A stretch of DNA of 64,000 bases, from NCBI GenBank assembly GCA_946965045.2, contig OX337237.1, positions 1,922,001-1,986,000 of the forward strand, written 5' to 3'. Below, one piece after another: positions 9,658-49,776 of the stretch. The notes under the pieces are model-generated. The model was not told the DNA's origin. It saw only the letters and a program-made list of their open reading frames with translations, and ran no database searches. The translations under genes and the position numbers were made by a program. The DNA comes from Epithemia pelagica (taxonomy: Eukaryota > Protista > Bacillariophyta). Position 1 is the first letter of the stretch. Every line of letters starts with the position of its first letter.

Positions 9658-9814
9658 AAACTTGGATGTCATCCCAAAAGTGAAACTCCTAGTACATTCC
9701 TTCACTGCAAGGACTGAGTCAGCATTCTTTGCCATTCTTGTTGCCTTTTGTGTCTTTCTTCTTTTTTGCAGAGAACCATTCTTGCTTGTAGCAACCATCA
9801 TTTAATCACATTCT

Positions 9815-9997
9815 CTGAAGTGTGGCTACAACCGGTGCACACCGAATGCCATTCTTTACGGATCTCCTGAGTACAGTGGAATCGGCATGAGATCTTTCTA
9901 TGCTGAACGAGGGATAGCACAACAAGCGTATACCCTAATGGCCTTTCTACGTTCTGAGGGACTCCCATGTGACCTTGCTTTGATCATGATCTCGTAT
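9815..9997 (+). pseudogene. Ambal-like non-LTR RT C-terminal fragment
   Basis: Manual translation: LKCGYNRCTPNAILYGSPEYSGIGMRSFYAERG. Confidence 0.6.
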
Positions 9998-10140
9998 GGC
10001 TTCCGAATCTTCATTTTCTCGGAACTGTCGACTGCCGTCTTGAAATAGCAAGCACTTTTGTTCCTCCGCTGTAACGGGAAAACGACTTGTTTTTGATGGA
10101 CAAGGCCTTACAATTCACTTCCAATTCAACCAAACTCTAC

Positions 10141-10339
10141 ACCAGGAAATAGTTGGCTGAGAGGTGAGGTTGTCGAAAGGGTGAAAGGAGAGGGAACAAT
10201 CTGCTGGGACCAGGAAATAGTTGGCTGAGAGGTGAGGTTGTCAAAAGGGTGAAAGGAGAGGAAACAATCACCAGGAAATAGTTGGCTGAGAGGTGAGGTT
10301 GTCGAAAGGGCGAAAGGAGAGAAAACAATCTGCTGGGAC
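10141..10339 (+). repeat. Tandem repeat, 3 copies of a 61-68 bp unit
   Basis: ACCAGGAAATAGTTGGCTGAGAGGTGAGGTTGTC... starts at 10141, 10209 and 10270. Confidence 0.95.
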
Positions 10340-10861
10340 TGAGCGAGTGAGTCTACCTACCAAGATTGCCCAATCCTGGTTTGGCATTTGATTCATGGGT
10401 CTCATCTACATCAATTGATAACAATAAACACCGTTTGATTGTCATGTGCATGGGAAGATGGTCCGTATCCCTATGTTGGACTTGACAGTAAACGACAAGG
10501 AGAAGGATGATGATGATAAAGTTGCCGACACCGACTATCATGAATCCGAAGATGACGAAAACAATGACACGTGATCATAGCGTAGTACTACTTAGTTACC
10601 ATGTGCGTACTACCACTACCATGCATGTAGGACATGATACTTATAGTCAAGTGTACTTTAACTTCCCCAGCCTGTGTTAACTTCAAAGTCATTGTATTGT
10701 ATGTGCACCATCAATATAATAATACCCTGCTGACCAATCCATTTTCCAATACCTTCCGCGCCATCGATAGAAAAATTGCTGTCATCGAAATCTTCCAATC
10801 CATCCAACAGCTTTTTGCCCTTGAACTTAAGATTGTTCACAATGTCGTGAAATGAATGTGT

Positions 10862-11330
10862 CTAGTAATAAAGAGAGCTTCTGTATCTGGTCATTCCTCC
10901 GTATGCACAGCAGCTGGTGGTGGCTGTGAGGATTTTTGTCTTGGATTGGCAAAGGTTGAGACGAAATGGTCGGCCGAGTTCTTGCAATCGTTCCAGAAAC
11001 CAAGGGAGGTCTTGATATGGCAGACAGATGGATGCGTCATCCACGACGGACGTGGTGTGTGCGACGGGCAAAGGCACTTAAGAGTTCATGACGACCAGAT
11101 CCTTCCCAAGTCACTGCCCTGTCCCTGGACCCTTGCAAACCCCCAGCCGCATCACCCACGAAGACACGTGGGCGCCAACCTAAACACGCACATCCTGACG
11201 TCCCATTACATACGTATTTGACTACTTCATACTGCCAAAAGGCAGGTATCTACCCATGCCGAGAATGCAACTCCCCAGGCAAGATATATGCTGGCAACGC
11301 CCACCTCAAAGTCTCCACCTCAATGAGAAA
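10862..11330 (-). pseudogene. CRE-type non-LTR RT fragment
   Basis: VDDASICLPYQDLPWFLERLQELGRPFRLNLCQSKTKIL; paralogous to the fragments at 30020-30310 and 47370-48330. Confidence 0.6.
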
Positions 11331-14300
11331 GATGCACGTGAAAAAACAAATATTGATCTAGTAAAAACAACACTACGTAATCTACCCTGCTAATTTGAAC
11401 CAGCCTGGTCAACATCCCTAGAACATCTTCTCACACCTGCAAATGAGTCAGGAATTTCTGTTCAGGAGTTATGACCTTGAGGACATATTTCACAGATTGT
11501 CCTAGGCCACATGATGCTCTTTTTATGCACCTCCCAAATTCACACTGTTGGAGAGAAAGGCCACTTCCAATGTATTCTTGGAAATAATTGCAGGACCCAT
11601 CGTTGCCCTTGTCTTCCTGATTGTTCTTTTCAGCACCATGAAATGTCATCACAATTTGACAGTATTAAAATGGTATTGTCATCATGAAGTTTCTTGCCAA
11701 TTCCTAGAGATGCTGGTTTGATTGTCCTGCCAGGGACAACGATGAATATGATGCCAGAATGTCCAACATGAACTGTCTGTCCATCATTGCTAGATGCGTT
11801 CGAAACACACTCTGCTTATCTTTTGTGTTGAAAATGTCTGCCACAATAATAATATATCCATCCAATACCTTTTTGTCGACAGACGTCGGGCAGCTTGGGA
11901 CTAGCAGCACCATCAGACACAATATGAAACGAGAAACCACACGAAGCGCCACGGAGATCAAATTCTCTTCTTTGGAATGCAACACAAGGGGACCCAACAA
12001 CAGCAGTTGAGAACCCAAAAACCTGAACCCATTCTATGTCGATCTCACATAATCATCACATGTGTGCGCGGTGTGATTGTGGAAAAGTTTTTCATTTTCT
12101 CTTTCTTCGACAAAAATTCCAGAATCAAATTGGATTGGACTACTGGAAGAAATAATATTACACAAGCATGATGGTGAAGGCTTCAGGTGAAGGCTTTAGA
12201 GGCAATGGGTGAACCTGTAAAACGACCAAAAATGGGGCATAGCATTGCTGTTGCATACACGCGTCGACCAGGGCGCTTCCAACCGGGACAAAATGAATAT
12301 GGTATGAGGTTTTCCCACCATTTTCTGCCCAATGGATTATATGTAGCATGTATTCCTTGAGCATGATGCTTAACTGTTTCCATATTTCCAACGAAGCAAG
12401 AATAATCACCGTACTAATATAGTTATTATGGTCCCTCCTTAAAATCGGTTGATCGTAAGCGATTGAGTCTTTATACAAGAATTTTGGGACGTTTTTATCC
12501 CATTCACCAAGAAATATCAACAACGAAAAACAACGCGAGACCGATTCGACTAAGCACATACTGAACAAACAGCTCAGCTTTCAAGTTTGCTGGAGTTGTC
12601 GCATATAACCATATTCTTGTAGCAGAAAAGGCTATTGAAACAATCATATGGCAGTTTGGTTTGCAACATGTAGGTACAATCGACCGTAGAGTCGTCAGCA
12701 AATCCTTTGGGCTTCCGCCAAGACACGATCCGTTCTTTTTGGGCTTCCGACAAGACAAGGTCGAGGCAGCGGAGACGATTTTTCAAACAACATTTATGCG
12801 TCCCCTTTTGAATTGACAATAGCAAGGTGGGAACCGCCATGGCTTGAATGCTGTTCGAAGGAGATAAGTCATATGGATTTGACCCGTAGGTATAGGTAGG
12901 TGTTGTTACCATTGGTGTAATGTCCCCATACCAAAAATCAATTACTCGTACTACCTGAGAAAAATGTTTCCACTCGATGACCTTCGCAAAACTTGGCGAT
13001 ATTGTCTCCGCACGTGGAACAATGAATGATGATCTGTAAAACCTGAATCTGCCCCTTTCACGTAGTTCTGGATTTTGTGCTGGTCCGTGCGACAACTTCC
13101 AAAAGACTGTTATTCTTCATTACTTTCTGACAAAAATGAAGCGAAGATACAATGCGCTGTTCAACAACCTAGCAATGGAATGATCTGCCGTGTTACAATC
13201 GGATCCAGACACAAACAATGTCGGCTGCCGTTCGTTTTCTAGACGATTATTATATTAAGTTTCTCATTCTGAGGTTTTGAAAAGCTTACTATTTATCACC
13301 AAAGAGCCTCTTCTGAGATTCTTCTTCTTTTCTTTTCAAACATATTGAAACAAGCCGCAAATATTGAACAACGTCCACGCTTATTCCATGTGCGTAGACA
13401 ACGTCGTCCGTTGCGTTTGATGGATGATATTTATTTTCATCTTCTGTCCGCTACCGTTTTTCCTGTGATGACTTGATCATCTCATAGTACTGCTTTTGCT
13501 GTTCATAACTCAATATCATTCATTAACAGTGAATGCCGGATGGGAAATTAATGTTCACATGCATATGTGATTTGACCATTTCACGTAGGTAAGAATGGAT
13601 GAAAACCACTTGGCCTTATTTCATCCATTCTCAACCCACGGTAATTTTCGATTTAATCCATCCATTACATGTGAAGTATTAGGTCCGATTTGCGACCGCA
13701 TACTTTTTTGAAGACTATTACAGGATCTAACAGCTGGCAAATCTGCTTTAAGACTGAAGTGTACATGCGTTAGGGACTTATGTTTACATTTTTACATAAA
13801 GCATTCAACGGATGGTATCCTTGGAAGATATTCCATGCCATTTTCATCCTCTTCCCTCATGGTCGCTGAAGTTAGAGAGCAGCGACTCGTCATGTAAAGT
13901 TTTAGTTTCGTTTTCTAGCCTGGGCAATTCCAGTGCTTCGATACAGAAAAAGGATTCAATAAGCAATATTAGTTGCTCCCTTCGGCCTAAAACCCATTCT
14001 TGCCAGCTGTTTATTTTGGACACGTCGATCCAATACATTCTTTGAGGACTCACCGGAGACTATACCCCTCACATTGGATAAGCTTATAGCTCTGGGAATC
14101 ATTTACTTCTCTTTCCAAATCAAAGAGTCATTTATAGGACATGCAATCGATATGTCTCACCTTGAGTCTGAAATGCAGAGAGCAGAAAGCAGCAATGCTT
14201 GAGTTTATTTACGTTGATTTTGGGAGACCGTCGAAGGACCCTACGCTTTCGAGATCACACACAAGACCAATTGACTCGCCTGACTACCCTTCGAACCTGC

Positions 14301-15729
14301 TTCAACAATAACATATCACCGACGATACCAAGTCACGGAGCACGTACGAAGATGTTTAGCTGGGCAATCGGAGTGGACGACCAAGATTGCACCTAAACAA
14401 AAGCAGCTGACCTTTCTATTTTCTTAAATGCAATCTGGAGCGTTGTAACGTGAGAAGTTTCCTTCGGTTCGTCCAAATAAGATACTTCAAAGGGAGCTTG
14501 TCAGCACAGATGAGTTTGAAAAAGAACTATCCTGAATGAATTTCCTCACATATAAGCACTTGACAAGAGTGCTGAACTCTCACCGGTGATGTTAACGCAA
14601 CGATTGCCTTTAAGGCTGGTCCATGTCAGCATTTTGTGTCACGTCAACGTCATATATCCGGGTAAAACAGCATTTCTGGATTTGTTTGAACAAAACCAGG
14701 AATCCTGGTTTTCTTCAAACAAAATCCGGGAAATTCATTAGGGATAGTGTTTTACTTATGCTAGAGTAGAGGCTGCCTACAGTTTCGAATATGTCAGGCG
14801 GGCGCTTTTGGTATTCAATTTTTAAGTGAAGAGTGGGGGAGGATGGGGGACAGGATTCGAAAAGGCGCGGTCTTTTGGACTTGTTTTGCGAGAGCATGAG
14901 GACACGGCGTTAGGCAAAATTTTCAAAACCAAATGCGGCCCGGCCTGCACGGTTTGGTTTTGTTTAGCTCAAGGATCGGCCTAAGAGTTATATATTTGCC
15001 AGAATCCAGCCATCACAATATCCACAAACGAAGAAAACAATCTCTTACTCCATGGCATTACTTGGCGCTCTGTGATCCTCCATTCATCCACTGTCGGGGA
15101 AGCGGACAGACTGTGCATTCTACCAGCCAAATGAGAAATGGCCATATATGAGAAATGGCCAACCATCGATGGACGCTTCTTTTTGATGCACCACACACCA
15201 CACAAGATTTAGCAGTCTTGACACTTCGTGTTGAGGCAATGCTCAGGATGGAGAAACGGGATGAAGGCTTCTCGTGGTCTTTGGGGAGGGGGCTGATCTC
15301 ATCAGCAAACTTGATCTTTGAATGGCGCACTGGAGTGTTGCTCCCTCCGTTTGATCCTTGTTCCACTAAATTGTCGCGAATCTTGAGGATTGATGAGCCA
15401 CTCATTTCCATACCGTGGATCACACCCGAGAAAGATCTCCTCTTTTTTACAGTTTTTGCATTGTTGTTCTTGATGGCACCTTCTTGGGTTGGGCGCAGAG
15501 CGGGTTTTGACGTACCTGTTGCCATCGCAACACTCTTTCTTGTTGGTGCGGCTTTGAAGCCGCACACTAACCTGGCGCTTGTCAATGTAGAGCGACATAT
15601 CTTCTCGTTGTTGTCTCATTCTATAATAGTGTTGTCATTGCTACTAATCCTCTGTGCTTTTTTGTGGACACCCTTTTTATCAAGGTCACATGTTGTTTGA
15701 TTGATGGGATCAATCAAATCAGGCCTCCG

Positions 15730-17816
15730 AGGTAAAAATCTGTCACGCTGTAAAACGAGGATGGCACGCGGTGCAACAGATGGAATTTTCCCTAAGTACT
15801 ACTTGCCAAGGGACATAAAATCCTGTTTCTTGCACCAAAGAGTAAACCAAGCAATCTTGTTCGTGTCCCAGGTTTCTTTTTCTTTCAGGTACAGCAGAGT
15901 TGGAAACTGCTTTATCAAAGCTTGCCAGTTGAATCGTACAGTCCTTTCACAGAAATGTTTGTAGTCCTCGTACTCGTCCCACATACCTTCTTGCAGTGGT
16001 CGGCCACTGCATTGCCAGAACTATTGTTGTTGTTATCAAGATTGTCCGTAATGTCATCATCTTTAGTACCCAAATCAATGTCGTAAAAATATCAAACATG
16101 GAAGCAGCACCTTCATCTTCCAGAATCTCGTCAGAAACTTTGTTATTGGCTGCAGTGCCTGCATTTGTTGCTGGGTCTTTGTTATTGTTTCCACTATTCT
16201 CTGCTTCAGCCGGAATGGGTTGATAAAACTTCTCAATGTCATTCCAGATGTTCAATTGTTCAATTTTTTGAACATCAATGATCAACGGACCACTGCAGCA
16301 TAACAGTGGATTGGCAATCATCGCCTTTTCTGCATCAACATCCTTGGTTTTAAGCATATAGTGCTTGTATTCCCTGATTACTCAATCAATGAGGACTTGG
16401 GTAGGCTATAGGAGATTCTTGTATTCAACAAGAGTTCGTTTGGACTCAAAAACTTTTCATTGTGAGCTTAGCGTCCAAACTAGAACTCTTCAGATCCAAA
16501 ACTTGAACTTACTTGGAAAGGAGATTTCAATCAATGGAGCCGATGATGCAGAAGGGTCATTGGGTCTGTAGTGTCATGGAAGAGGCTTGTAAAGGTTGCA
16601 ACACAGCCTTGTATTTGGCTAGTTGCTTCCACTGTTCCAGGCTGGGAAACTTGGCTTTGAAGGCAGCGTCATTGAAGAGGGAGGATGCAAAATAATCCTT
16701 CATTATGAACACATCACGAAACAAACCGTGGATCATAATCAAGGTACCTCCGACTCTCGTATGGGTAGGGGGATTTCCACAATAGTCATACCATTTTTTT
16801 CAGCAAATTTTTCAAGTTTTCAAACCGGCTTCTTGCTTTTCTACTCATCAACCAGGATGAGAAGATATGGAAAACCTTGAAGAGATTCACAAACGTCTTG
16901 TTTTCATCAATGACTGTGCCCCCTCGACGCCAGACAGCCTGACCAGTGGCATGTTTCAAGATTAGCTTGGCACGATGCATATTGCACTTGCCAGCCTTGT
17001 TCTGGCCAATGATATACTTGCCGGCCAACACCCCAGAATTGGTACTGTCATTAATTGATGTGAATAAATCAAGACTTGTAAACCCAACTTGATGGAGCAG
17101 AGACTCAGTGTGATCTGCAATTTGGCAAGCCGTGTGCCCTTTCGTTTCCAACAAGCCGATGGGGATTTTGTACACTTGCAATTTTTGGGGTCAACAAGAA
17201 TCAAAGTGACACCCAGGATGTCTTTTTTTAATCCCTGCCAAACATCACGGGCAATGCTGGTGAATCTTGACCACAAAGTAGTTTGAAAGTGGATCGGATA
17301 GCATCAACAAGATCGTTGATCAGCTGTAAAAACTCAATAGGAATTGCGATTGCTGATGGAGCAATCCAAAGCTTTCAATAGGTTAGCGTTGTTGATTGTA
17401 AATTGGAGAAGTGACCTGAAAGCTTCCTTTTCCACAGTCCGGGTAGGAAAGCCCATGTCATTGACGAACTCAAATATTTTTTCGTGAAGTTCTTGTCGGA
17501 CGGATGCTCGAGTTACAGTGGAGGAGACATACGGCGACATCTTCTTCTGTCCTTGTTTCTCCATTATACTGTCTTTCCGGGATGTTGGCAGGACGGATGT
17601 TCTCATAGCTGGTCCTTGCCCAAGAGAGAACCAATCCTTTGGTCGATCTTGTAATGGCAAGAACTTAAAGTATATGTAATGATGAGAAATAAAGTTCTTG
17701 CCACACGTCTTATTCTGACACCTCAAGTTCAAACCTTGTATGTATTGTGGCCAGTTATCCAATTTGTATACCATTTTCAATGGACAAAGTTGTGTAGAAA
17801 TAATACTGGAGGACAA
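15730..17816 (-). pseudogene. hAT-like transposase remnant (frameshifted)
   Basis: Successive frames give GFPTRTVEKEAFRSLL, LGVTLILVDP, IPIGLLETKGH, INDSTNS...CNMH (CxxH) and QWKQLAKYKAVLQPL. Confidence 0.7.
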
Positions 17817-19864: not shown

Positions 19865-20194
19865 TTATACTATACTTTTAAATAGGTCAGACATAGTTTT
19901 TGTCACAATGGGTATCGACATTGAAGGCGGTCCTTGAGTAATCCCGCAATTTTGTGGAATGTTTGATATTTTCTTGTTAAGATGAGCAGCAGAATGTGTA
20001 GTACGTCCTCCAATGAGAGTTGCAGCAACACCACTCATTGCCGTTACTACAATTGCTTCACTGTTGTACTTGTAATTCAAATGATTGCAATATTCTCGTG
20101 CATATAGCTGTAGTAATTCAAGAACGGCCGATTTACCGCTCCCACCAGGTCCATGAAGAAAACACACCAAGTTTTTATGATTCATATCACACAT
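19865..20194 (-). pseudogene. PIF1-family helicase fragment (Helitron-like)
   Basis: Walker A FLHGPGGSGKS and the PIF1 motif TAMSGVAATLIGGRTTHS. Confidence 0.8.
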
Positions 20195-20959
20195 TCTCTG
20201 CTGTGTCGCCCTATTAGCGTGGGATACTCAGATACTACTCCTATTAGCGTGGTAAAGTTTGCTCTAGTTGGACTATTAACATGGTGACTGTCTTTTAGTG
20301 TTACTATGTAGTGGGAGATGGTGTGACTGTTGAGTTGGCGATTGCGGTTCTTGGAGTCGGTGTGCATGGACCTCGTTTCGTAGTAATTCCGTCTTCTTGG
20401 AATTTGCGATAGACACGAGAGATACCATGTTTTTTCAGTACCGGATCCCATTCTTCATAGAACGCTGCAACTCCGTCAGTCCAATCACCAACAACCACGG
20501 CATCGAATTCAACCCAGACAGCCAAAACACCTTTTCCACACTCTCATCAAGCAACCGCTACTCCATTTCGGAGACCACCCAGACGAAGAGTACAACGAAG
20601 AAACGGACCGTTACTACGACGGCAACCCGAACGCCCAACCACTGCCCTTCCTCCGCCAACCGCACCAAACGACTCGCCGCACTCGCCAACCAATTCAATA
20701 ACACAACACAACAACACCACCAACCATCCCAGCCCTCCACACCGGACACCGACACACCGACACACCAACACGAAAACGACCCGCATCTCCCAACAACCCG
20801 CCTACCACACCAACCAACGATACCAGCGACACCACCAACACCACCCCAATTGGTAACCCCACTTTCATTCACTCCTTCATCTCACAAAAAATCACAACCG
20901 TTTCCGCCAACCTCGACAAAGTGTTACTCCTCCCACACGCCCAAACCCGCACAATCATG

Positions 20960-21184: not shown

Positions 21185-21679
21185 ATATCTCACTGTGTTT
21201 TAGAATTCTTCTACCTTCCTCTCTACATATGTTGGTTCCATCCAGACATTGTTCCTGTCCGCGCCATCGCTCCGGTGCTTCTTCCCCCTGCCCCGTCCCC
21301 GAGGCGCCGCACATTCGTCGGTGCCCGGTACACTTCCGCGCCACTATCTGTTTTCACCCGCACTCGGGCTCGTGTAACTCTCGTAACAACGCCCACCTGA
21401 TCAGCTATTGTCCTCTCCTTCCCTTCCGGCTGGTCCACCGAGACTCGATATACGGACACTTGAGAAGCGAACAGGACAACAAGGACGCAGTGCCCAAGTC
21501 ACCACCCAACCCCTACCGAACGAAAAAGGCAACGGCCCACAACACCACCGAAACGGAGCCCGCCCTCAAGATCCACCTCCACGTGGCCGTCAACCACAAT
21601 CCAAACACAGCAGTCGAGGCAACGCTACCTCGCCTCATTGAAATGAGTGCTTGTAGAATTACAAAAAGTTGAGCGTGGT

Positions 21680-22090
21680 AATTTTGACATGGGGATCCTT
21701 TATCAAGAATTTGTTTCGCTGCGGATGATTTTCGTTCCATATCGGTAATCATCCCCAGAATTATTTGACGGGAAGGTTTCCTCATTTCCTCTTCCTCGAA
21801 GAACAATGGAACCATGACAACAGGTTCTGCAGTGAATCTTCCATCACCGGTGGCATGGGTTTTGTCCATATATGCTATCAACCCCACAACAAAGGCTTCT
21901 GGATCATCTTTGTATTTTGCTACTGTCTGACAGAAAACATCTACATCTTGAATGTTTTGTATTTTGGAATTTGGAACATATGGTTTGTACAGATCTTCCT
22001 TGTCGAGGATAGTATTTTCTTGTCGTGTTGCTTTCTCTTCTTGTAAGACACGATGCAATTGACTAATGAAATCAAACACACCAGTGTTGA
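21680..22090 (-). pseudogene. Plavaka-like transposase fragment, paralog of 61403-62998
   Basis: VFDFISQLHRVLQ...AFVVGLIAYMDKTHATGDGRFTAEPVVMVP aligns directly with VFDFIHQLQRVLQ...AFVVGLVCYTDKTHATQDGRFTAEPVVMVP. Confidence 0.9.
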
Positions 22091-22440
22091 TCGTTTTGGG
22101 GCGGATGTTCGAAGGATGTGCGGGTAGAAGGCCGAGAGGTTCGATGTGGATGTCGGTGATGGAACATGTATGGCGGGAGTGAGGGGTGAGCTCTTGAAGG
22201 ATATTAAAAAGGCCATCACAAATAGTGTTTGATGCATGTGTCATGGGTGCTTTGCGACAAAAAAAGAGGTGATCGCCATATTTGTCGAGGTCAGTGGGTT
22301 GTTGGCAGGTGCAATGGTGGGGAGGCGAGAAAAGAGGGAGGCGTAATTTCCAAATGAGTGCTATGAGGTATAAGTGGTCCGGAATGTGGAAAGGTTGGAA
22401 GCGTCGTGGTTGGTGAAGGGCCGTTGTGGATACAACCAAG
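22091..22440 (-). pseudogene. CRE-type zinc-finger/endonuclease fragment, fused in frame to the Plavaka fragment
   Basis: HCTCQQPTDLDKYGDHLFFC...IHIEPLGLLPAHPSNIRP (CxC...GDH...C...RP motif). Confidence 0.7.
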
Positions 22441-23689
22441 CAACCGTTGGCGTCCTCACGAACCAGGGCTTTAGCACGACTACTGAGTTTCTTGCCTTCC
22501 CCATCAACGAAGTGAAGCCCATTCTGGGATGAGTTGACGCACTGGATGGTGTGTTACCATCGACAAGTCCAAGCTGAAGGCGAAGCGAGTGACCAAGAAG
22601 TTTGGATTCTGTTGTCGCATTGCGTTTGTGCGGTCTTCAAGCTACTGCGCGAGGCAAGGTCCCAAGAAGATGCAATATGGCATCAATGCTTTAGGGTATA
22701 GACGCGATGCCATCATGAGAATGTCCCCAACCATAACACTGGTCACAGCTCTACGACCTACCGGTGTTTGAAGGGATCTTCCCGACCTTCAACGCCCACA
22801 CTATAGAGCCAACAGGGTACAACTTGTACCTCAGAAGTGCGCCCGACACCTTCACGTTAGATGCAACCCAGTTACACCACTACCCTGGGTTCCCAACTGA
22901 ATTGCTTCCACCACCTGTCTGGTAAGAAGGTGATGAGGGGTTGTGTAACAACTTTGGCGAAGTGTTTGGGACACGATCGGCTCCAAACCCTCCATATCTG
23001 AATGATTTTGTGGCAGGTCATTTTGCATCTATGCAGGAAGGCTCCAAAATCGTCACATCTGACAAGTTAACATTCCAAGTGGGTCCAGTTGACATGGCGA
23101 ACAACCAACGGGAAAAGTTGAAGCTGGAGACTTCATCATGGAAACTTCTTGGAATCCAAAATGAGTGGCAAGCATTTGAGTCCTGACGTAGTTGACAAGT
23201 ACTCAAGTACATAGGAGACAAGGTCGTCTCGCAACATCCCTGTTGCCAGACGTGGTCGCCTCCTGCTTCCCATGACGTAGGTGCCATGGATTTGAACCCC
23301 TGGAAGAAGAAGTAGTACTCTCTGTAAGGGAGTGCGTTGGGGATGGGTGATTCAATGTGTTGGAAGAAGACGTCCCTCGTATGCAAACAAGTACGTACTA
23401 GAATGCAGTACGAGACGAGATCGTCTGGCAACACATTGGATCACCATCAACAAACTGATGTAAGTTGCCTGAAAGCAATATTGTATAAAATTCAGGGAGT
23501 CAGTTGGGAATAGGTGATTCGATGTGTGATAGGAGACGAGATCGTCTGGCAACACATCGGACTGACGGAGTGACCACAGCTTTCCGACCACGACCAAGCG
23601 ATCCGTTTCCTACGTTGGCAAGCGCACACGCGAGCGAGGACATTGACACACGGAATCTAAGAGCGATCGACGGCGACACCGAGATTCGC

Positions 23690-24225: not shown

Positions 24226-24273
24226 TTAGAACTGAACTTGACGTCAGAATTAGAACTGAACTTGACGTCAGAA
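24226..24273 (+). repeat. Perfect 24-bp tandem duplication containing TGACGTCA
   Basis: TTAGAACTGAACTTGACGTCAGAA x2. Confidence 0.95.
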
Positions 24274-25347: not shown

Positions 25348-25348
25348 C

Positions 25349-37700: not shown

Positions 37701-37741
37701 AGGCTTTTAGAAGCAAGAAGCATGAAACAAAGTATTCATCT

Positions 37742-38413
37742 ATGAGAAGACTCTTGAGGAGGAATGGCGTTGTTATTAGAAGTAAAACACACGAAGCCCA
37801 AACACATCCCAGTGAGAAGATGGCAGAGGGAAGGGTCTTTGTGGCAAGAATCGTCCCTTCCATCAACCAACCCAACAGACATCAAAGCTTTTTAGCAAAC
37901 ATGGATCAGACACCCATATTCTTTTCCATGACTCCAAATACAACTTTGGAAACAGCTGGAGTGAGGACCGTCAATGTAAGGCCATCCTCTGGGAGCACGA
38001 CGCGACTTACTCTTGCTGTTTTTGTGACTGCTGCAGGTGAAGTCCTGACTCCATACATCAGATACAAGGGAAAGGCCGAAGGTAGGATTGCCAGAGACTT
38101 TCAGAATCCACAAGAAAAGGGCTACCCAGGTAACTGTTATTTTGCTTGCCAAGAGCGAGCATGGATGGATGAAAGGTGTTGCTTGGACTGGGTGACGAAA
38201 TGCCTCAACCCGTGGGCAGACATGGCTCCTCCAGGCGTCCTTCCACTGCTTCTGTTGGATCAGTACAAGTGCCATCTCATGGCATCTGTTGTACAGGCAA
38301 TCCACAACCTTGGAGTGGAAAAAGAGTTCATTCCGGGTGGTTGCACTTCCTTGACACAGCCTGTAGACGTGGGGATCAACAAACCCCTGAAGAATCGTGT
38401 GAGAAGCCATTGA
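37742..38413 (+). pseudogene. Pogo/Tigger (DDE_1) transposase fragment
   Basis: NMDQTP, LLLDQYKCH and QPVDVGINKP form the catalytic triad; no N-terminal HTH or TIRs. Confidence 0.9.
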
Positions 38414-38859
38414 GAGCAAAACAAACCAAGGCTCCAAGTCGTCAAGAACTTGCCCATTGGTGTGTCAAAAGTTTACAAGAGCTCAATGTTGAAATAGTGA
38501 GAAAATTCATGGTGACATGGGGATTTCCCCGTTGCTTCCCATTCCTATCGTTGTCTTGTATCTTGCGCCGTTTATAAGGAGCCTCTCACCATCACCGTCG
38601 GTTTCTTTGTTTGATAGCGTCTGCCGGATGGAGCTGCATCCCGCTACCAACGTGGCCCATCACCGGGCGGCGGCGGACCAGATGCGGCGGATGTCAGTGC
38701 CCTTGTAGCTCGGATGAGTTCGTGCTACATTGCTCATTCCGGCAGACCGGGTTTCGATTCTCCAATGGTACTCTCTGTCGTCCATGTATTACGGCTGGGG
38801 AACCATTAACATCTCGTCGTTTACATCGTGCCGGATTGACCTTTGCAGGCGAGTGTTGA

Positions 38860-39020
38860 GAGGCAAGGGAGCGGTCACGTGAATGGGTGTGCCGTACCAC
38901 CAGGCCTCCCGTTGTTGCTGGAGATCATTCCACCGCCAAAAGATGAGGGACGATCCGTGATCCCAGTCCCACCAGGAGGCCGCCAGAAGCTGAGAAAGCA
39001 TGGAGCGGCCCGCAACACAA
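38860..39020 (-). pseudogene. YR-retrotransposon ORF2 fragment
   Basis: SWWDWDHGSSLIFWRW motif, which I recall upstream of the RT in stramenopile YR elements. Confidence 0.55.
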
Positions 39021-39961
39021 ACCTCCGAGAATTGAGGTGGGGGCGCGACAGCAGTAGAATTTTGATGTTGTTGTCGGTCCACCTGGCGTGACGGCGGGGG
39101 CTTGTCTTGCACAGAATCCTTGGTGCCCGTAACTGCGGAAATGTCCACCTCGCAGAAATGGAAATCCGGATCTGCTTAAAGGATGGTGTTCACATTAAAG
39201 TAGGTTTGGGAGACACAACAGCCACTGACCGCATCCCATTCACACTTCAGGGACCGTTTGACCGCAGAAGGGGTGAAGAACTTGTACAACGCAGGCTCTA
39301 AGAAGGCAGATTCTTCTGGGGAGAGTGGCTGTAGATGGTGGAGGGAGCACTGATTCTGCAAGTAATGCCTGAGTAGTGGCACTCGTAAGTTTGGTGGTAT
39401 GTGCTGTAAGGGTGGCAGCGGCATCCGCATAAGAAACCTTCTTTGAGCCGGGTTTCCGGTTTCTGCGGTTCGAATCGTCCGGACGGTTGGGATGTCGTTC
39501 CCTAAATCCTCTTCCTTGGGGGTCTGGGTTGGGAGTTTCTTGTCCTTGCTTATATCGGAATCAGTGTTGGAATCTGAAGATTGAGGATTCAGAAGATGAC
39601 GAAGACAAAAACCCAAAGAGGTGCATCTACACAACAATTTCTTAGATGGCCATAACATCTACCTGGCTACGCTAGCCGATGTTCGTGCAATCATCGATGT
39701 GCGCATGGGACGACGAACAAACCGAGAGCGAAGTTATGCACATCGGTACAATAGTGATATTTATGTCACATCTATGGTGGCTGAGGATCTATCCACACCA
39801 AGCAACTTGAAGGCACTTGTGTGTATATCATCTCAGTCTTTCTCATCAGCAGAGAAAATCAAGTTTGAACCAGGAGACATATGTTTCTTCCATGGTGATG
39901 TTGTACACTGTGGTCCACCACCAATAAACACAGAGATATCTTTTTTTATATGTAATGCTTG

Positions 39962-40075
39962 ACTTTGTCGCTGGACACAAACAAACATGAAGAATTGTCT
40001 ACATGAAGAGCCATCTCATTACTTTGTCGCTGGACACAAACAAACATAAAGAATTGTCTACATGAAGAGCCATCT
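39962..40075 (+). repeat. ~59-bp-period tandem duplication
   Basis: ACTTTGTCGCTGGACACAAACAAACAT...GAGCCATCT at 39962 and 40021. Confidence 0.95.
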
Positions 40076-40078: not shown

Positions 40079-40670
40079 TTGAGAGGGAAAGTCAATGAGT
40101 TGGAACGGCGTTTCGAGAAGATGACCGTAACACGAGGAACAAAGGACACTTATCCGGGCGTGGACATCGAGTTCAAGGGCGATGGAACCGTGGAGTTACA
40201 GATGAGCCAATACATCGACGAGGCCATCGCCGCGTTTGACGAACCGATCAGGAACACGGCCCCAACACCCGCCAAGAAAGACCTTTTCGATGTAAATCAA
40301 ACAGCCATCAGACTGCCAAAAGAAAAAGCAGACATGTTCCACAGCATCACGGCAAAACTACTATACATGTCCACCCGGGCACGATCGGACATTCAGACGG
40401 CCATCGCCTTCTTGACAACCCGTGTAAGCACGTGTACGGAGTAAGACCGAATCAAGCTCAAACGCGTGCTGGAATACCTACACGGTACAAGAAACTTGTC
40501 GTATGTCCTAGCTGCCGATGACATAAGAAATTTGGTCACCTGGGTTGACGCATCATATGCAATCCATCCAGACATGAAGAGCCACACAGGTGGAGCCATG
40601 TCCTTGGGACGTGGTGAATTGATCACCAAATCGAAGAAACAAAAACTGAACACGAAGAGCAAGTCGATCT
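40079..40670 (+). pseudogene. Copia RT C-terminus/RNase H fragment
   Basis: AKLLYMSTRARSDIQTAIAFLTTRV and WVDASYAIHPDMKSHTG...KQKLNTKS. Confidence 0.9.
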
Positions 40671-41394
40671 TGGTCGAAAGTCTTATCTGTCTATTGAGAA
40701 TCAGATACCTGACATGACCAATTTCATACATCTAGTTTTTAATCCAAGAATTCCTTAAATACTGCCAAGCATGACTCTCAAGTTGATGAAGTTGATGATG
40801 GGTTTGAAGATACACATGTATTGGGGTTCTAGATGGCCTCCACTGTCCGATCCAATGCATCTTGACTCAAGTGTCGATAGAAAAGGAACATACTGGATTG
40901 GGTTCAACACCTTCCAGACATCCCGTGTCTCCTTCGGGAGAATCCTGCCGACCCTATTATCGACAGTTCCCCGCGTCCTTCCGCATTGGAGGCTACTCTC
41001 AACCGGCCGCCTCCTTCCCCTGCCGGCAACCAGCGTTCCAACAATGTTTGCACGGGCCGTCGAAATCCCTGGCTGCCAGGAAAGATCGCTCCCGTTCTAA
41101 GGCCCGACGTTCCACTTCTTCCTCTCCCACCATGGCCCCGCCTGCGTCTCCCACTCGCGTTCCCACCAGTCCTGGCCGTGGAGGTCGAGCGCCCATTGTT
41201 GCTTCCCCTGGTCGTGGTGGTCGTGGAATGCCCAACACTCAGTCTCGTTGCTCGTCTTCTCGCCCACAGTCGTCTTCCCCAGTCGCTCCGCCCCGCCAGT
41301 CCCATACCCCGCCCGACACCGATGATCATCCCCTGGTTGTGGCTCTGGGACAATCGCTTTTTGCTTATTTGTCTTAATTTGTGGTGTTGCCTTG

Positions 41395-41730
41395 TTCGCT
41401 CAGAGTTGGTTCCACATGCTGGGACCCTTACCCACCTTCTGTGGACTCTGATGTTCTTGAAGATTTATGGGAAAGAGCACACAATGTGTGCTCTGGCTGG
41501 TGGCGTCGACCCAAGTACTTACAAAAAGTGGGTCTGGATCTTCATTGATGCCATTTTCCTCTTCGAAGGACAAGTGGTGAGTTTTACATGCTGCAGCTTC
41601 TTTTTGCTTCTCGTGTCTAAGATTCTGTTGCATACTATCTTTTAGATTGTCTGGGAGAACCAATTTAAGCTGGATAGGGGCAATGACTGCCTCATCAGCG
41701 TCGATGGTACGGACTTCAGGGTGGCTGGGA
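41395..41730 (+). pseudogene. PIF/Harbinger-like transposase fragment retaining an intron (41577-41645)
   Basis: HLLWTLMFLKIY...KKWVW...GQV|IVWEN...LISVDGTDF after removing a 69-bp GTGAGT...TTTAG intron. Confidence 0.7.
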
Positions 41731-41749
41731 ATGGACGAAAATTCTGTTT

Positions 41750-42829
41750 TTCCGGTTCGTTGATTGGCCCCATACGTAGACGTAAGAGACATGACGTAGT
41801 CGGGTTCTTTCATTGCAAAGACATGGAAGTCAATATTATTCATCTTCCCTTTCTAGGCGTTGCAATCACCGACATCTTTATCATTGAAGTGGGCTTTGAT
41901 GGTGTCGCCCTTGATGAACTTGGGCCAGTATCTACGCTTCTTGATCAAAGCAGAAGCGTAGACACCTTTCTTCCGTAGTTCAACAATGCCCTTGAGGACA
42001 CAGAACCCACTGTCCAATATAACAACATGCCCTTTCCCAAAGATTGGTGTCAGCACACGCTACAATAAACCGACTGTATTCCTTAGTTGTTGTATGGAAT
42101 CAAGCGACCACGCGGAGCATCCTTCCCCTCCACCAGCTCCATGCCCCATAGAATCCCAGAAATGGAGCAAACCGTGTGGTATTCGTTGCCCAAGGGATGG
42201 GGCTTTCTTGGAACAAACATCCATCCTGGGCAGGTGTACTTACTGATCCATGGACTCATGGACTCGTCCAAGCAACTGACCCAGGATGGTGTGAACTGAA
42301 CAGCCATGTTGCTGTTCCATTCGTCCACCATCTGTCTTACTTCCCAGAACTTGTCTGTGTACGGCAGCGCGTCTTGATTGGTGTAGAAAATTGATTTCAG
42401 AATGTCCTCAAATTGCTTCTTCGACATCAAATCGTTAAGACAAAATGGGGCACCACGAAATCGATTTGTTTCCATGATGGACCAAAAATCCATTCGATCA
42501 GGACCGTTGATTGTTCCCATTAATAGCCAAATTCCAAGCCAACGAAGAAATCCACCGTAGGATAATTCTCTGTGGGCACCATTGTTGATTAGACGCTTGT
42601 TCGTTTCCAGTATGATCACGTCCTTCACGAACGATGTGAAGAAAAAAAGCTCGAAGATCTGTAGAAGAGTCGGCTTGACTTCGGAAGGAAAGGCAAGTCG
42701 AGGCATTAGCTTCTGCCCTCCTGCCATTGCAAGATAGCATGCTCCTGAATGCTCCCACGCCTCAAAGATTCCATCCGTATCTTCACCTGGATTTCTGGTG
42801 TTCCAGTATCCCGAAGCCTCGGGCACCAT
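41750..42829 (-). pseudogene. PiggyBac-like transposase fragment
   Basis: CLDESM...FVPRKPHPLGNEYH, VILDSGFCV and KKRRYWP. Confidence 0.85.
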
Positions 42830-43157: not shown

Positions 43158-43225
43158 TATCCTGGACTACGTCCAGCAACACAACCCAGCATATCCTGGA
43201 CTACGTCCAGCAACACAACCCAGCA
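43158..43225 (+). repeat. 34-bp tandem duplication
   Basis: TATCCTGGACTACGTCCAGCAACACAACCCAGCA x2. Confidence 0.95.
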
Positions 43226-43559
43226 AGGCTCCCAGAGATCCGACAATACCTGAAGGGATTTGGTTGTTCGCGAACGACAGTGACGCGCAAGACGCGTGGG
43301 AGTTTGCCCAGTCATTGATCGAGACAGGCACTCCCACAGTCGCCGGCTCCCGCACCAGCCATTTGGTGTTCGTGACCCTAATGTCACTACTGGCTCTGAC
43401 GAGTCTGCTGATTCCTCCTGAGGAAGCGTGCCCTGCGCATCTGCTGCTGCAGTGAATAATGATAAAACGCATCTTATTGTTCAAAATGCATTTGTATGCA
43501 CCCAATTTAGTTATTCGAAACGTTTTGCACGTCGTCTATGTGCAATGAACACCGACGAA

Positions 43560-44010
43560 CATGGTGAGACCATTGAGTTGACCTGTGAATTAGACTCACA
43601 TGCAGACTCCATTGTCCAATGTTCCCATTGCGACTGCTGCTACTGTCTGGACCGACAGCGATAACCAGTCGTACTTGCTTGTTATCCACCAAGCATTTTT
43701 CTTTGGGGACCGTATGGGCAGTTCGTTACTCTGTCCGAACCAAATGCGTGCCAATGGTGTTGTGGTCAATGACGTACTGAAACAATTTGGCCCACAAAGT
43801 ACGCATAGCATCCGTGTGCCGGATGCCGACATGGTCATACCACTTACCATGACTGGTGTGATCAGTGGCTTTGCCACTCGTAAACCCACTTCTGACGAGC
43901 TTGAACACTTGCCACGCATAGTGCTAACTGCTGATAGCCCTTGGCAACCTCGTTCGGCCGCCTTTGTCAACGCGGAGGAGAAACTGGGTGTAGCTGCCGC
44001 TACTGCCGTT
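43560..44010 (+). pseudogene. Copia (CoDi) protease-region fragment
   Basis: ELDSHAD followed, after a frameshift, by VPIATAATVW...SLLCPNQMRANGVVV...RKPTSDEL. Confidence 0.75.
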
Positions 44011-45199
44011 CGCAATGGCGAGGTCGGTCGGAGAGGACGTTTTGACAGGGTCAAAGAACATTCCAATAGGCAGCATGTAATTATCCGGAAGCGGATGAGC
44101 AGCCAATAGAAGCCAAGTAAAGGCTGTTACCGACGTCGGGGAACCTTCCACCAGCGGTAGAGTAAGCGTTGGGACGCTTTCGTTCACTTCGTTCAATTTA
44201 GAATTGAGTGTAGTGATTTTAGCTGCAAGAGCAGGGAGAACCGTAGAAGACCCAGAGGGCGCGGTTTCAGAGGTATGCTCCAGAGGAGGATTGTCAGGCC
44301 CAGTGGGTATGGGAAAGGAGGGTGGAATTTGTGTGGAAGACCATCCAAGTCTCGATCGATTATTGCGTCGTGGTTCTTCCGTACCAGGGTTGCTATTTAT
44401 TGCAAACAAATCGCACAAGAGATGATTTTGGATTACTATATTGCTGATTCAGACGACAAATCAACGTCTTCAGAATTCGGTTTTCCTTTGTGCTTGAAAC
44501 CCTATGTTTCTGAACTGTTGAGAACGTTTTCGACGGAGTGTTTGCGTCGTAAATCTCTTATCAATTCAAGACCATCGAATGACACATCATTCCCATACAA
44601 CAATTATACTGATGACGACAATTCCACCAAACAAACCACGAAACAAGCCCATGCAAAGCAAACCAGTCCAAAATCTCGTAGAAGAAAACAACCACAGCAA
44701 CCCAAAAAGTCCCCGCCTTATTCCACCCACTCCTATTCAACGCGATACTGCAACACCATCATTACAAAATTCTTGCAATCTACTTCCCATTCCAAACAAC
44801 AAATCAAATATCCAGACTACCGACATCAACCAGGAGACCCCCCAAAGTTTACAACCCCCGCAAGATGGTCCCTTATCATGCCTCATTCCAAGTAGATACA
44901 AAGTCATCGACTACTACTGGTGAGCCTAATAGTGTTAGTACTAACAATTTGCAGAATTCTGTTTCTCTTGTTGTGCTGGGGAGGCAATTTGCTTTCACAT
45001 TGTCACTGGGGCGGCCGTCTGGTGATGGTGGCTCGGGGTTTGGTGCGGGACGGTGTGTCAATGGTTATGGTTCGTTCCTAACATACCGGCGGGTCAGGGG
45101 ATGCAGCGTTATCTTACAATATGGATTTGCCGCGAGGGGCCGTGCGTCTGGGAAACGATGTCCAGATGGCGGCGTGGATGCTTGGTGTAGTGCCTCTAT

Positions 45200-45640: not shown

Positions 45641-45946
45641 ATGGCATGTGGAGTGCCAGACTTGTCATCGGTGAGAGGACGGGCGGGAGAAACCCCCGTT
45701 GGTCTGGTGTCGTTTCCTTTACGACCTGTGGCAAGAACACGTGTTCTTTGACCACATGACGGAGTTGGCAATTGTGGGTGGAGCGGTCGTACCGTGTGAT
45801 GTCGTATAATGCTTCGTCTGCGTACTCGGAGGCAAAGAGGAAAAGACCTTTTCGGAAGGCGGTGAGTCCTTGGTCCTCGCTCTGTTCCCAGTGCTTATAA
45901 TGGCATAACCCCTACACCACAACAAATTCGGTTTGCGTTTCACACA

Positions 45947-46439: not shown

Positions 46440-47150
46440 GACATTAGGTAGATTCTTACTCTCTTGTAACTTGGGATCGAGGACTTAGCTAGGACAGCCC
46501 CATACACATGCCCGTCGGAGTACAGTACAGTCCATTTTACTGCCAGAAAAGATTTCCATTGGTGAAAGATTGGTGTCTTCGTGGGGGATGTGGTTGTATA
46601 ACCAGGTCGCATATTCCATGGCCATGGGCCAAAGTGATGGAGCGAAAGCACTAGGCCAGCAAAGATGAAAGTGTATCATCATGGCACCATCATGGCACGA
46701 ACCATGTATGTGACTGTTTGGATGGCACGTTCGGCGCCTGCGTTTTCGTGATGTGCCCCAACACCGGAGAGTGTGCTGGATGGTGGTGGGAACGTATTGT
46801 GATTGGCTTGCAACGATGCTTGAAGCGCATCAGATGTAAATACCCCATTGTCCGAATGATACCGTGCAATGCGTCGTCCGGACTGGTGAGCAATGACTTC
46901 AAACTGATTCATGGAGTTGATGGTATCACTCCTGCCCAACGACACCTGAGGATAACAAAAGATAGCCTTTGAACCGTGGTCGAAGAAGATACTACCTCCA
47001 ACAAATCGATGTTCTGGACGTTCACGCCCACCTGTTTGTCAGAGATGACCTCGGACGGTGGATTCAAAGTGATCGATCGATACCATATCTCCTGGTGCTA
47101 GTTTGTGATCAAGTGGAGTCAAATGTCGAGCCTCAGGGTGTGGAGTATCT
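46440..47150 (-). pseudogene. Copia integrase core fragment
   Basis: PGDMVSIDHFES, YHSDNGVF, GAHHENAGAERAI, LWPMAMEYA and VWGCP. Confidence 0.9.
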
Positions 47151-47158
47151 GACTTGAC

Positions 47159-47370
47159 TTGCCCAACACAATTTGGGCAAAACGGTTCCTGGCTGAGCAG
47201 GGATATGACGTGAAGAGTACGTTTGCACAAGACAAGCAAAGTGCAATTCGCCTCGAAAAGAACGGCTTACGCTCCGCAGGAAAACAGCCCCGTGGAACAA
47301 GAAAGCATCGAGATCTTCTATTGTCCCACAGAACAGATGCTTGCTGATTTTTATACCAAGCCGTTAGGGC
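47159..47370 (+). pseudogene. Copia RNase H fragment
   Basis: IWAKRFLAEQGY...QDKQSAIRLEKNG, and EQMLADFYTKPL in the next frame. Confidence 0.8.
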
Positions 47371-48330
47371 TAGGGTTTATCCGAATGATAAATCACAAGT
47401 GATGGCGGATGAGCAGTGGCAGCGGTAGCCGAGACCACCGAGTGCTGGGGTATTGAGGTTGGCAATGAGTAGGGAGTGTAGGTGGACTTGGTGAGAGTGG
47501 GTGAGATGTTGCAAAAATTTGGTTGTGAAAGCGTCGAGTCTGTCGGTAAAAGCGATTGATTTTGTTTATGAGTTTGGTAGGGCCTGGAGAGCTTTGGCGT
47601 TGTGGGAAAGCTTGGTGAGTTTGGTATCAATGAAGGAGGCGATGAAGCCCGTGCTACCAATGGTTTGGCCGAGGAAACGGAGGCCGGTGGTGACTTCTGC
47701 GGTTGTGGGGTCTTCGGGATTGAGGAACGAGAGGGCGTTGAGGAGGTGAGTTTGTTGTGGTGGAGGTAGGTTCGGGTGCGGGCTTGTGCCGTTGGTGGAG
47801 GTTAGGATGCGGCATTTGGATTTGTTTAAATGAATGCCATATTACTGACCGAGTTTGTGGAATGTTTCGAGGAAGGGAAGCAGATCGGAGTGGGGAAGAC
47901 AAACCGACGTATCATTCATGACGCTGCAACTGTGAGCAAGGCCGCCTTTGGTGTCGTCGTATGGGTCGTTGTTGCGTAGTCGTGTGGAGGCGAGCTGTTT
48001 GAGGAGGGTGTTGATTTGCCGGTTGGGGGTGAAGAGAACTAAACAAGCAAAGAGGGGGCGGAGGGGGCACCCCTGGCTGAATCCTTCGTCTTGGTTTATT
48101 GTGGCGTTGTTGCCTTGTTGGTCCTTGTACCAGTTGGTGGTGGTGGTGGTGGCGGCGTAGAGCAGGTCGAAAAGGGGGAGGAGGGGTGTGGTTTCCTCGC
48201 GGGAGGCCAGGATCTCTCGGTAACGGGTGCGAGAGCACGCATTGAACATATTGGTCAAGTCCAATAGTAAGAGGGCGCGGGTTGGGAGTGCGTTGGGTGC
48301 AGTGGTGGTGAGGAACTTGTCGATGTGGGT
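47371..48330 (-). pseudogene. CRE-type RT fragment
   Basis: LDLTNMFNACSR...EGFSQGCPL (RT domains 3-4) followed by the domain 5-7 region. Confidence 0.8.
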
Positions 48331-48740
48331 CTGTGCTCCCCTGCAGTGAGCGCACGATGGGTGCTGGCCCGTTGGCAGTTGGCATAGCATGTCCCACGCA
48401 AGTGATAACTCAAGCAGATGGGAACCGTTGTGTTGGTACCTTGATCCGTCGTGGTAGGTGCATGCTCCCGTAGCTGCGCAATCCTGGTCCCAGAGTTTGT
48501 AAATGCCTCTTGCAGGGCCGCAACAGGGTTGTGGTTTTCCACCCGTTGTCCGGGATCCCGATGGTTGTTGTCCACCCGTGGGTTGTTCCCTCCACCACCA
48601 CTAGGTGGAGCTCCTCTTGAAGGAGGTGCCGGTGTTTCTGGCACCACTCTATATTTGGATGGCATGGGGGCAAACTGGTGAAAGGCTCGGGCGGTTACAA
48701 TCCATTCAAGTTCTTTGAAGCTGGGGACTACCACAGGTCT
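48331..48740 (-). pseudogene. YR-retrotransposon gag fragment with CCCH-like finger
   Basis: ICLSYHLRGTCYANCQRASTH. Confidence 0.6.
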
Positions 48741-48864
48741 CCCTTAGTTGATGGCTTGTAGGTAGGCCAACATCTCCAGCTGGATCTTGCGTAGGATGAG
48801 AGGCAAGATAGGAGTGTGGTCTTCTGAGGACAGGTTGAGGTGTGCTTCCAGTGTTGGCCATGTC

Positions 48865-49480
48865 TCATACGCTGCTATTGCCGACGCGAAGTTTACGGGC
48901 CACGGTCATTTCTCGTATCAACAATATGTTCACCGCCATCAGAAAGCTCATAATACATTGGCTGAACTTGATGAACCCGTTGCCGAAACCAAAAAGGTAA
49001 CCAATTTCCTCAAAAGTATATCGGATCCCTCGTTGGCGGCGGGAAAGACGGTCGTCAACGGAGATGCAGCAAAGCTTTCTGATTTTGAAGCATGCCAGCA
49101 GTATTTTGGCACGTTGATTGCTGCATCCCGTACCGACAAGACCAATGACGAGAATCGAAAGATTGCTGGTGTGGGTACGACTAAGACTAGTGGAAAGAAG
49201 AATGGTTGTAACAAGCAGAATAAAAAGAAGACACGTCATTACAGTTTGGATGAATGGCGCAAGCTCTCTGATGAAGAGAAGGCCGAAATCCTTCGTGCCC
49301 GTAAAGAACAGAAAGACGCTAATGGAAAGCGTAAGGCCGGAGCCGTGCGAACTGAAGATGAAAATGGCTCTCACAAGTTGAGTAAAACTGAAACTCCAAA
49401 GTCTGGTAACACGAAATTGGAGACCACTGACCTGGATGGTGACGACGCGCCGAACCATACTTGTACGGCAGAAATGATGG
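48865..49480 (+). pseudogene. Copia (CoDi) gag fragment
   Basis: FSYQQYVHRH...KKVTNFLKSI...YSLDEWRKLSDEEK. Confidence 0.75.
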
Positions 49481-49559
49481 CATGCATGTCAGATATAAGA
49501 CGCATCTTGGAGAGCTCATTTTTGAGGAAGTTCTGCAAGAAGTTTTGAGTTGATTGTTG

Positions 49560-49776
49560 ATTTTGTCCACCATGGCCACTCCAGCTGCAATGTGTCAGGC
49601 GTTTATTCGCCTTCAGTTCTCCAACCCGGCATCCAGTACCTAGTGGATCGCCAAGGCGAGCCGAAATCACGACGGGCGAGTGGCTTATCAAGCCTTGTTT
49701 GATCACTACCTAGGGCCCAATAATGCTAGGCATAAACGATTCAATTTTGAGAAGTATTGCAAGATTCACGTGAACC
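49560..49776 (+). pseudogene. Copia gag fragments abutting the left end of the Plavaka-like element
   Basis: AYQALFDHYLGPNN and RFNFEKYCKIHVN, with internal deletions. Confidence 0.65.

Follow-up and report, generated by a model that had tools for sequence, protein, structure and literature searches.

Loci that hold an archive of transposable elements (TEs) are known from flamenco-type clusters of PIWI-interacting RNAs (piRNAs), and a locus of similar archive character occurs in the diatom Epithemia pelagica. We analyzed a window of 64,000 nucleotides, the whole stretch C10:1922001-1986000 of the 60.5-Mb, 23-contig assembly, in which a mosaic of short TE pieces occupies positions 9658-49776 (C10:1931658-1971776). 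A reading made from the letters alone (the sequence-only reading) had proposed this region as a candidate TE-memory locus. Plain coordinates below are window positions; C with a number and a colon introduces a contig position, B, C or D with a small number denotes a mosaic piece, and labels such as L001 denote source loci taken from the genome. The mosaic lies at 56-58% along the 3.43-Mb contig C10.

Like the piRNA clusters flamenco and 42AB and a flamenco-like cluster of endogenous viral elements (EVEs) in Aedes aegypti (PMC7161354), the mosaic extends over tens of kilobases, is dense in truncated pieces of many TE families, includes inactive lineages and has the character of a heritable archive. 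piRNA clusters are built mostly by nested insertion and decay and hence contain collinear remnants, whereas the mosaic pieces tested lack siblings, further pieces of the same element. Flamenco-type clusters are also strand-biased, in contrast to the unbiased mosaic, and all piRNA clusters are defined by their piRNA output. We know of no PIWI pathway in diatoms and of no master silencing locus described in them.

The EVE loci of mosquitoes are thought to contain TE-virus hybrid DNA that was captured as recombinant DNA, and they serve as templates for small RNAs (10.1101/127498, PMC5497376). These TE-rich loci exceed 50 kb and resemble the mosaic in that short foreign pieces occur interspersed with TE fragments. 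Their pieces are viral, co-oriented with long terminal repeat (LTR) elements and attributed to reverse-transcriptase copy-choice, whereas the mapped pieces of the mosaic are all TE-derived, have mixed orientation and carry neither poly(A) tails nor any other sign of RNA origin. In Paramecium, excised internal eliminated sequences are end-joined into circular concatemers that template small RNAs (PMC5346157), which is likewise short transposon-derived DNA ligated end to end. Those concatemers are transient, extrachromosomal and developmental; the mosaic, in contrast, resides in a chromosome, is inherited and is older than the allelic divergence. In Phaeodactylum, small RNAs of 25-30 nt map to 359 methylated TE regions and not to one master locus (PMC4247016).

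Helitron and Pack-type capture arrays also chain unrelated fragments in mixed orientation. Since such arrays ride in a mobile element they occur in several copies, unlike the mosaic, whose junctions are unique in the genome and at which no carrier termini were seen. Arrays of transgenes and endogenous pararetroviruses consist of many short pieces whose order and orientation are random and which are joined at microhomologies at a single integration site. The mosaic differs from such scrambled exogenous or viral DNA in that it yielded no pieces of vectors, viruses or host genes and its sources are the organism's own kinds of TE.

The mosaic is a real, inherited patchwork of short TE pieces that spans about 30-40 kb. 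The region was used in chunks of 3.5-10 kb for DNA searches of its own genome, the large searches scoring the best 39-40 candidates each, and was compared with 23 source loci by blastn and tblastx. This mapped at least 57 pieces with sharp edges, 105-1059 bp in length with a median of 314 bp, each to a different repeat family. Together they account for 55% of the sequence in 9658-49776 and for 64% of that in 19.6-49.5 kb, and represent at least 25 TE lineages from at least six superfamilies. The left quarter (9.6-19.6 kb) is weakly supported because 11070-14560 is almost without relatives in the genome. Both strands contribute (sense orientation about 17 plus to 15 minus), and 16 adjoining pairs meet within 12 bp, which bears out the description of many TE fragments joined end to end on both strands. 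Examples of tight junctions are 25163/25169, 26163/26164, 26407/26410, 27128/27129, 28633/28634, 41745 and 48866. One run comprises seven pieces (24660-25169, 25163-26164, 26163-26410, 26407-27129, 27128-27831, 27833-28634 and 28633-29100).

Base-by-base reading of seven junctions showed blunt joins or 1-4 bp of microhomology and no target site duplication (TSD). No pair of LTRs or terminal inverted repeats (TIRs) of at least 60 nt exists inside the mosaic, in agreement with the lack of paired ends and TSDs that had been noticed from the sequence. The sole inverted repeat (26163-26410 versus 32881-32979) consists of two independent pieces of one Copia family. Pieces abut directly, with no repeat family between them, and no genome match in the own-genome DNA searches crosses any mosaic junction. 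Traced pieces have both ends internal to source open reading frames (ORFs) of 426-1733 aa. None carries an element terminus, save a possible repeat of the miniature inverted-repeat transposable element (MITE) kind at 14563-14985 with a TIR-like end.

The joins are contiguous in unitigs of short reads. Unitigs from three runs on two samples of one study, aligned with 24000-29900, bridge the junctions at 25168, 26163, 27128, 27832 and 28633 with a uniform single-copy depth of ~110-130x in unique parts, and contain no alternative joints over this interval. Five junctions bridged at single-copy depth rule out an assembly chimera. A contig that is ~1% divergent spans 26163 too, so this junction is older than the allelic divergence. 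Runs X1 and X2 match the assembly exactly, and X3, by record from the same sample as X1, gave contigs with ~0.5-1% SNP-like differences, mostly transitions, that are probably the second allele. Contig ctg1359l of ENA ERZ21939226 is 100% identical and hence represents no independent haplotype or strain and adds no support.

The mapped features are, from left to right (percentages are identities to genomic copies):
9824-10119: Copia-like piece, sparse left edge
10656-10914: Copia piece of the L001 family, sparse left edge
10913-11063: RVT_1 piece, sparse left edge
11097-11423: repeat of no assigned family, sparse left edge
11424-14562: stretch nearly free of relatives, with only 12849-12991 (70%) and a 55-bp repeat match; Pfam and Atlas blank; membership unproven
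14563-14985, plus strand: short non-coding repeat, at least 35 copies at 85-89%, right TIR-like end kept
15135-15851, minus strand: repeat-family piece, 72-77% to C1:682184 and others
19955-20212, minus strand: PIF1-helicase piece, 96% to C7:1595653, internal to an 899-aa source ORF
21614-22099, minus strand: piece B3, 94% to C16:2021602, inside a 578-aa source ORF, dN/dS (ratio of nonsynonymous to synonymous divergence) 0.18
22089-22428: RVT_1-family piece, 75%, adjoining the next piece
22417-22532: Copia piece, 89%
22723-22932 (88%), 22940-23138 (match at the protein level only) and 23147-23509 (91%): three adjoining pieces
24660-25169, plus strand: piece B7, 72% to C4:2702735, within a 1127-aa source ORF
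25163-26164, plus strand: piece B8, 75-79% to ~10 copies, three stops, perfect 53-bp tandem duplication at 25242-25347
26163-26410, plus strand: Copia pol piece B9, 87%
26407-27129, plus strand: Penelope-like piece B10, 95% to five copies, no stops in 240 codons, dN/dS 0.11
27128-27831, minus strand: piece B11 of a 1900-2000-aa polyprotein family, fully open, nearest relative 72% in protein
27833-28634, plus strand: piece B12, 83% to C17:2264274, dN/dS 0.11
28633-29100, minus strand: Copia piece B13, 89% to C16:2032401 (1607-aa ORF, weak RVT_2), dN/dS 0.06
30324-31330: piece C1, 86-87% to C7:1835385 and C2:2239588
32807-33120, minus strand: Copia pol piece C2, 82-95% to many copies
33787-34806, plus strand: piece C3, 77% to C11:1195817, two stops, several indels, dN/dS 0.09
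34834-35158, plus strand: Copia piece C4, 87% to C9:2127887
36067-36336, plus strand: piece of the same polyprotein superfamily as B11 but of another lineage, nearest C9:2886223, 77% in protein
37701-38525, plus strand: pogo (DDE_1) transposase piece, 70% to the closest copy
38837-39031: short piece, 93% to C3:962436
40092-40660: piece, 76% to C8:369753 and C10:3130784
41364-41745: piece, 68-70% to ~10 copies, adjoining the PiggyBac piece at 41745; Harbinger is a weak lead from an overlapping ORF
41745-42803, minus strand: PiggyBac (DDE_Tnp_1_7) piece of 1.06 kb, one frameshift, nearest relative 70% in nucleotides
43317-44032, plus strand: Copia pol piece D1, 80-90%, with an ~80-bp internal deletion that is not an intron
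44338-44877, plus strand: piece of a family with 596-aa ORFs, a size typical of transposases; fully open, nearest 69% in protein
45642-45902, minus strand: RVT_1 piece, collinear with 47548-48288
46444-47161, minus strand: Copia piece of the L001 family, 71% in nucleotides, two stops, one frameshift
47548-48288, minus strand: RVT_1 piece, 46-56% protein identity to L016
48309-48866, minus strand: piece D2, 96% to C3:2179813, internal to a 426-aa source ORF
48866-49458, plus strand: Copia gag piece D3, 94-97% to at least 30 copies

Several Copia lineages were recognized by Pfam (RVT_2, gag_pre-integrs and SH3_retrovirus, some matches below cut-off), including the source of D3, which encodes a 527-aa gag and a 1418-aa pol ORF with RVT_2. 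Pfam also supports an RVT_1 retroelement, a PIF1 helicase, a pogo DDE_1 and a PiggyBac DDE_Tnp_1_7 among the source and window ORFs. The PiggyBac piece corresponds to an internal part of a 731-aa intronless ORF in its nearest relative. The source of B10 is a 780-aa ORF that we read as Penelope-like from a weak C-terminal GIY-YIG match (below the Pfam cut-off), and the Harbinger assignment is a weak Atlas lead only. About 12 superfamilies had been proposed from the sequence; Copia, RVT_1, PIF1, pogo, PiggyBac and, weakly, the Penelope-like type were recovered, whereas hAT, MULE, Plavaka, CRE, Ambal and YR/DIRS were unconfirmed. Among 50 window ORFs, Pfam matched only PIF1, DDE_1, DDE_Tnp_1_7, a weak zinc knuckle and, on a flanking ORF, a weak Pol_BBD. 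Many source ORFs have no Pfam match. Nothing is recognized by Pfam in the element family of L005:1-5199 (C8:1938000-1943198) either, which occurs there and in ~16 other places as intact elements with single frames of 1200-2000 aa and 62-72% mutual identity.

Protein searches with two formerly unannotated ORFs identified both as TE pieces, and no host-gene pieces or host-type domains occur among the ORFs sampled. The tRNA and Rfam scans of the mosaic were blank, it contains no poly(A)/T or telomere runs, and it has no match to 72,556 plasmids. A cDNA origin by intron loss was considered for the 80-84-bp gaps within 14619-14985 and 43361-44021 and rejected, as these are not bounded by GT..AG and resemble deletions by slippage. 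On this point the relatives of the PiggyBac and pogo pieces are uninformative, since they contain no introns. Two ORFs, 21516-22553 on the minus and 26250-27260 on the plus strand, cross junctions, but their extensions are antisense or chance frames, and in-frame fusion was discarded. The repeat at 14563-14985 lost 84 bp internally at a direct repeat of 3x20 bp and is possibly an ordinary MITE-like insertion; its family has at least 35 copies of ~0.5 kb, of which L002:4875-5370 has 17-nt TIR-like ends.

Compared with their nearest genomic copies, the pieces show identities between 67 and 97%. In about 10 of the 57, identity to an extant copy is at least 89%, and most lie at 67-88%; the youngest reach 94-97%, and none exceeds 97% with any living copy. 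In one Copia subfamily, at least 27 copies share 97-98% identity with a truncated copy in L011 (C13:2712000-2721999), a locus in which truncated copies of one Copia family stand side by side and a 750-bp deletion is joined at a 4-bp microhomology. About half of the compared pieces stem from lineages of which the assembly contains no close copy. In the case of B11, 105 of 105 candidates were scored and the best has 72% protein identity, within a family of intact 1200-2000-aa ORFs; 44338-44877 likewise has no close copy.

Codon-wise comparison with the nearest intact relative gave dN/dS of 0.06-0.2 for B3, B10, B12, B13, C3 and C6, while in B7, B11 and 46444-47143 dS is saturated and dN low. Because the differences are mainly in third positions, most divergence arose while both lineages were functional, and neutral decay after fragmentation amounts to ~0.3-5%. 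The mosaic thus looks young despite its fragmentation, as first perceived; the accompanying statement that frames are largely open applies to some pieces, such as B10 and B11 (0 stops in 230-255 codons), whereas others have 1-3 stops or frameshifts. Over ~3.3 kb, the youngest pieces contain no indels, compared with 12 piece ends. The CpG observed/expected ratio is 0.79 in the mosaic versus 0.94-1.07 in intact retroelement ORFs, and 0.75, 0.59, 0.91, 0.94, 0.69, 0.78, 0.85 and 0.76 in successive 5-kb bins. There is no age polarity, since nearest-copy identity, CpG ratio and dN-based decay are all non-monotonic; young blocks at 19.6-29.1 and 48.3-49.5 kb enclose older blocks. Two-copy tandem duplications of 17-59 bp, perfect or nearly so, occur at 24226-24275, 24762-24795, 25242-25347, 39962-40075 and 43158-43225. 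These five resemble traces as left by error-prone break repair or slippage after joining.

Each of the 12 pieces examined at the DNA level matches its own 10-kb source locus once, and for none of the 12 is there a second match in the window. Similarly, none of the 19 neighbor pairs in 19.6-29.1 kb derives from one element. B11 and 36067-36336 have different nearest relatives and are thus different lineages and not siblings. The pattern of one short internal piece per lineage is not that of collinear remnants of a few nested elements. We simulated a 40-kb region under three regimes. Insertions of 5 kb followed by random deletions (model A) gave 15-42% same-element neighbors and 60-81% of pieces with a sibling. 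With random insertion of individual 0.55-kb pieces (model B) the values were 0-13% and 43-50%, and with chains of 5-20 pieces inserted en bloc (model C) they were 0-1% and 4-16%. In addition, model A needs a mean deletion of ~0.9 kb to yield pieces of 0.6-0.8 kb, at which point ~24% of pieces carry a terminus. The simulations reject the decay of full-length insertions in place as well as the random insertion of pieces one by one, and model C fits best.

We therefore favor a chain of short internal pieces from many unrelated TEs that was end-joined in few events and then mildly decayed, an explanation that we consider an even call. Under this scenario, extrachromosomal or broken TE DNA would have arrived as short pieces, most likely pre-joined into chains of several. 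It may have entered in a few episodes, by double-strand-break repair or integration of concatemers. Only mild aging would have followed, with some CpG loss, few stops, and small tandem duplications and deletions. Nothing shows ongoing acquisition of pieces, or a function, at the locus.

Several points weigh against chain-wise joining. The RVT_1 pieces at 45738-45902 and 47548-48288 flank 1.65 kb of other pieces in collinear order and form a candidate interrupted element, so the statement that no element resumes after an insert stands for all tested pieces and pairs but this one. Insertion of a small chain into an older piece would leave such a split pair, too. Since the TE library comprises no more than 23 loci and 45% of the region lacks annotation, siblings or termini may have escaped notice. 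Microhomology deletions occur in this genome (80-84 bp in two pieces, 750 bp on C13), and collinear TE remnants lie directly right of the window. The ages of the pieces differ, which requires several events. Our simulations are simple, with uniform positions, exponential sizes and no inversions, and we know of no natural process that joins only TE pieces into chains.

Many of these points are at home in an ordinary TE graveyard, in which full-length insertions in a tolerant, probably heterochromatic region at mid-chromosome were whittled down by microhomology-mediated deletions and rearrangements. The mosaic is embedded in at least 84 kb of TE-rich sequence (the window and 10 kb examined on each side), its pieces are of unequal age with moderate CpG loss, the RVT_1 pair looks interrupted, deletions of the appropriate type are present in pieces and on C13, and the sparse library may hide siblings. 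Deletions of ~0.9 kb on average, required for pieces of 0.4-0.6 kb, however, predict 40% same-element neighbors and 80% of pieces with siblings, against none of 19 and none of 12 observed. The traced pieces are also without termini (the MITE-like repeat being the possible exception), the youngest pieces are free of indels despite their 12 ends, and the longest piece measures only 1.06 kb. We regard this explanation as unlikely, though it is the main rival.

The sequence-only reading had compared the locus to a CRISPR array without repeats, a template for silencing RNAs. A dedicated memory locus would be an analog of piRNA clusters, putatively transcribed into small RNAs that silence matching TEs, with or without active sampling. 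It would fit the representation of many lineages from several superfamilies, some without full copies now, by one short piece each, and the stability of the locus in both alleles. A similar archive character is reported for mosquito EVE loci (10.1101/127498, PMC7161354), and the small RNAs of Phaeodactylum do map to methylated TEs (PMC4247016). In the same study those RNAs stem from hundreds of TE regions, not a master locus, and in E. pelagica most pieces, at 67-88%, may be too diverged to guide silencing of extant copies, next to about 10 pieces at 89-97%. The lack of repeats and of an age gradient, identities of at most 97% and the 17:15 orientation argue against an active, polarized sampler and a uni-strand cluster, and the likeness to a CRISPR array is not sustained. 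The orientation would be compatible with a cluster of the dual-strand type. A memory function is, on this comparison, improbable. We hold it rather doubtful, too, that the mosaic may be a stramenopile counterpart of piRNA clusters in a narrower sense, a heritable archive with one piece per lineage, formed by end-joined chains of extrachromosomal TE DNA at one chromosomal site, whose putative small-RNA readout would direct methylation. Such an archive would explain archived lineages without any full copy. If the locus is a small-RNA source, how diatoms recognize new TEs becomes directly testable.

A single, local chromothripsis-like event that broke up an earlier nest of full-length TEs, re-ligated the fragments at random and eliminated most of the DNA would yield random order and orientation and junctions of the end-joining type, and would account for the many source lineages without a full copy, the only one having been destroyed here. 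With ~11% of the DNA retained, ~60% of pieces should have scattered siblings, yet none of 12 has one, one further tested pair was negative, and the unequal ages of the pieces speak against a single event; we consider it very improbable. The extreme structure might suggest a chimera from assembly or amplification or an integration of laboratory DNA, and the only other public record (ENA ERZ21939226) is identical and hence not independent, but an artifact is next to negligible given the five bridged junctions in two samples, an allelic variant included, and the absence of plasmid or vector sequence.

If chain-wise joining is correct, it offers a natural route to a compact transposon catalog without nesting and decay, the kind of structure for which piRNA clusters, EVE loci and ciliate concatemers are the other known examples. 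The mosaic keeps pieces of TE lineages that are gone from the rest of the genome, which makes it useful for reconstructing TE turnover.

The surroundings of the mosaic are also rich in TEs. Its left flank is a Copia copy (4945-9631) with 93% identity to C17:2260000-2269999. The right flank carries long ORFs, one of which (55217-56653, minus strand) matches DUF7769 and helix-turn-helix domains, some of the latter of transposase type. Within a 444-aa ORF (51594-52928) without Pfam match, positions 52015-52635 consist of seven to nine tandem units of 69 bp. The next 10 kb to the right contain further TE remnants that are longer and older than the mosaic pieces and partly collinear. A 5.8-kb repeat is present in two direct copies (C10:1919497-1925304 and C10:1982477-1988297; window 1-3304 and 60477-64000), 94-99% identical and spaced by 63 kb, which enclose the mosaic and its flanking elements. 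More copies of this bracketing repeat are found on C13 at 2.95-3.05 Mb.

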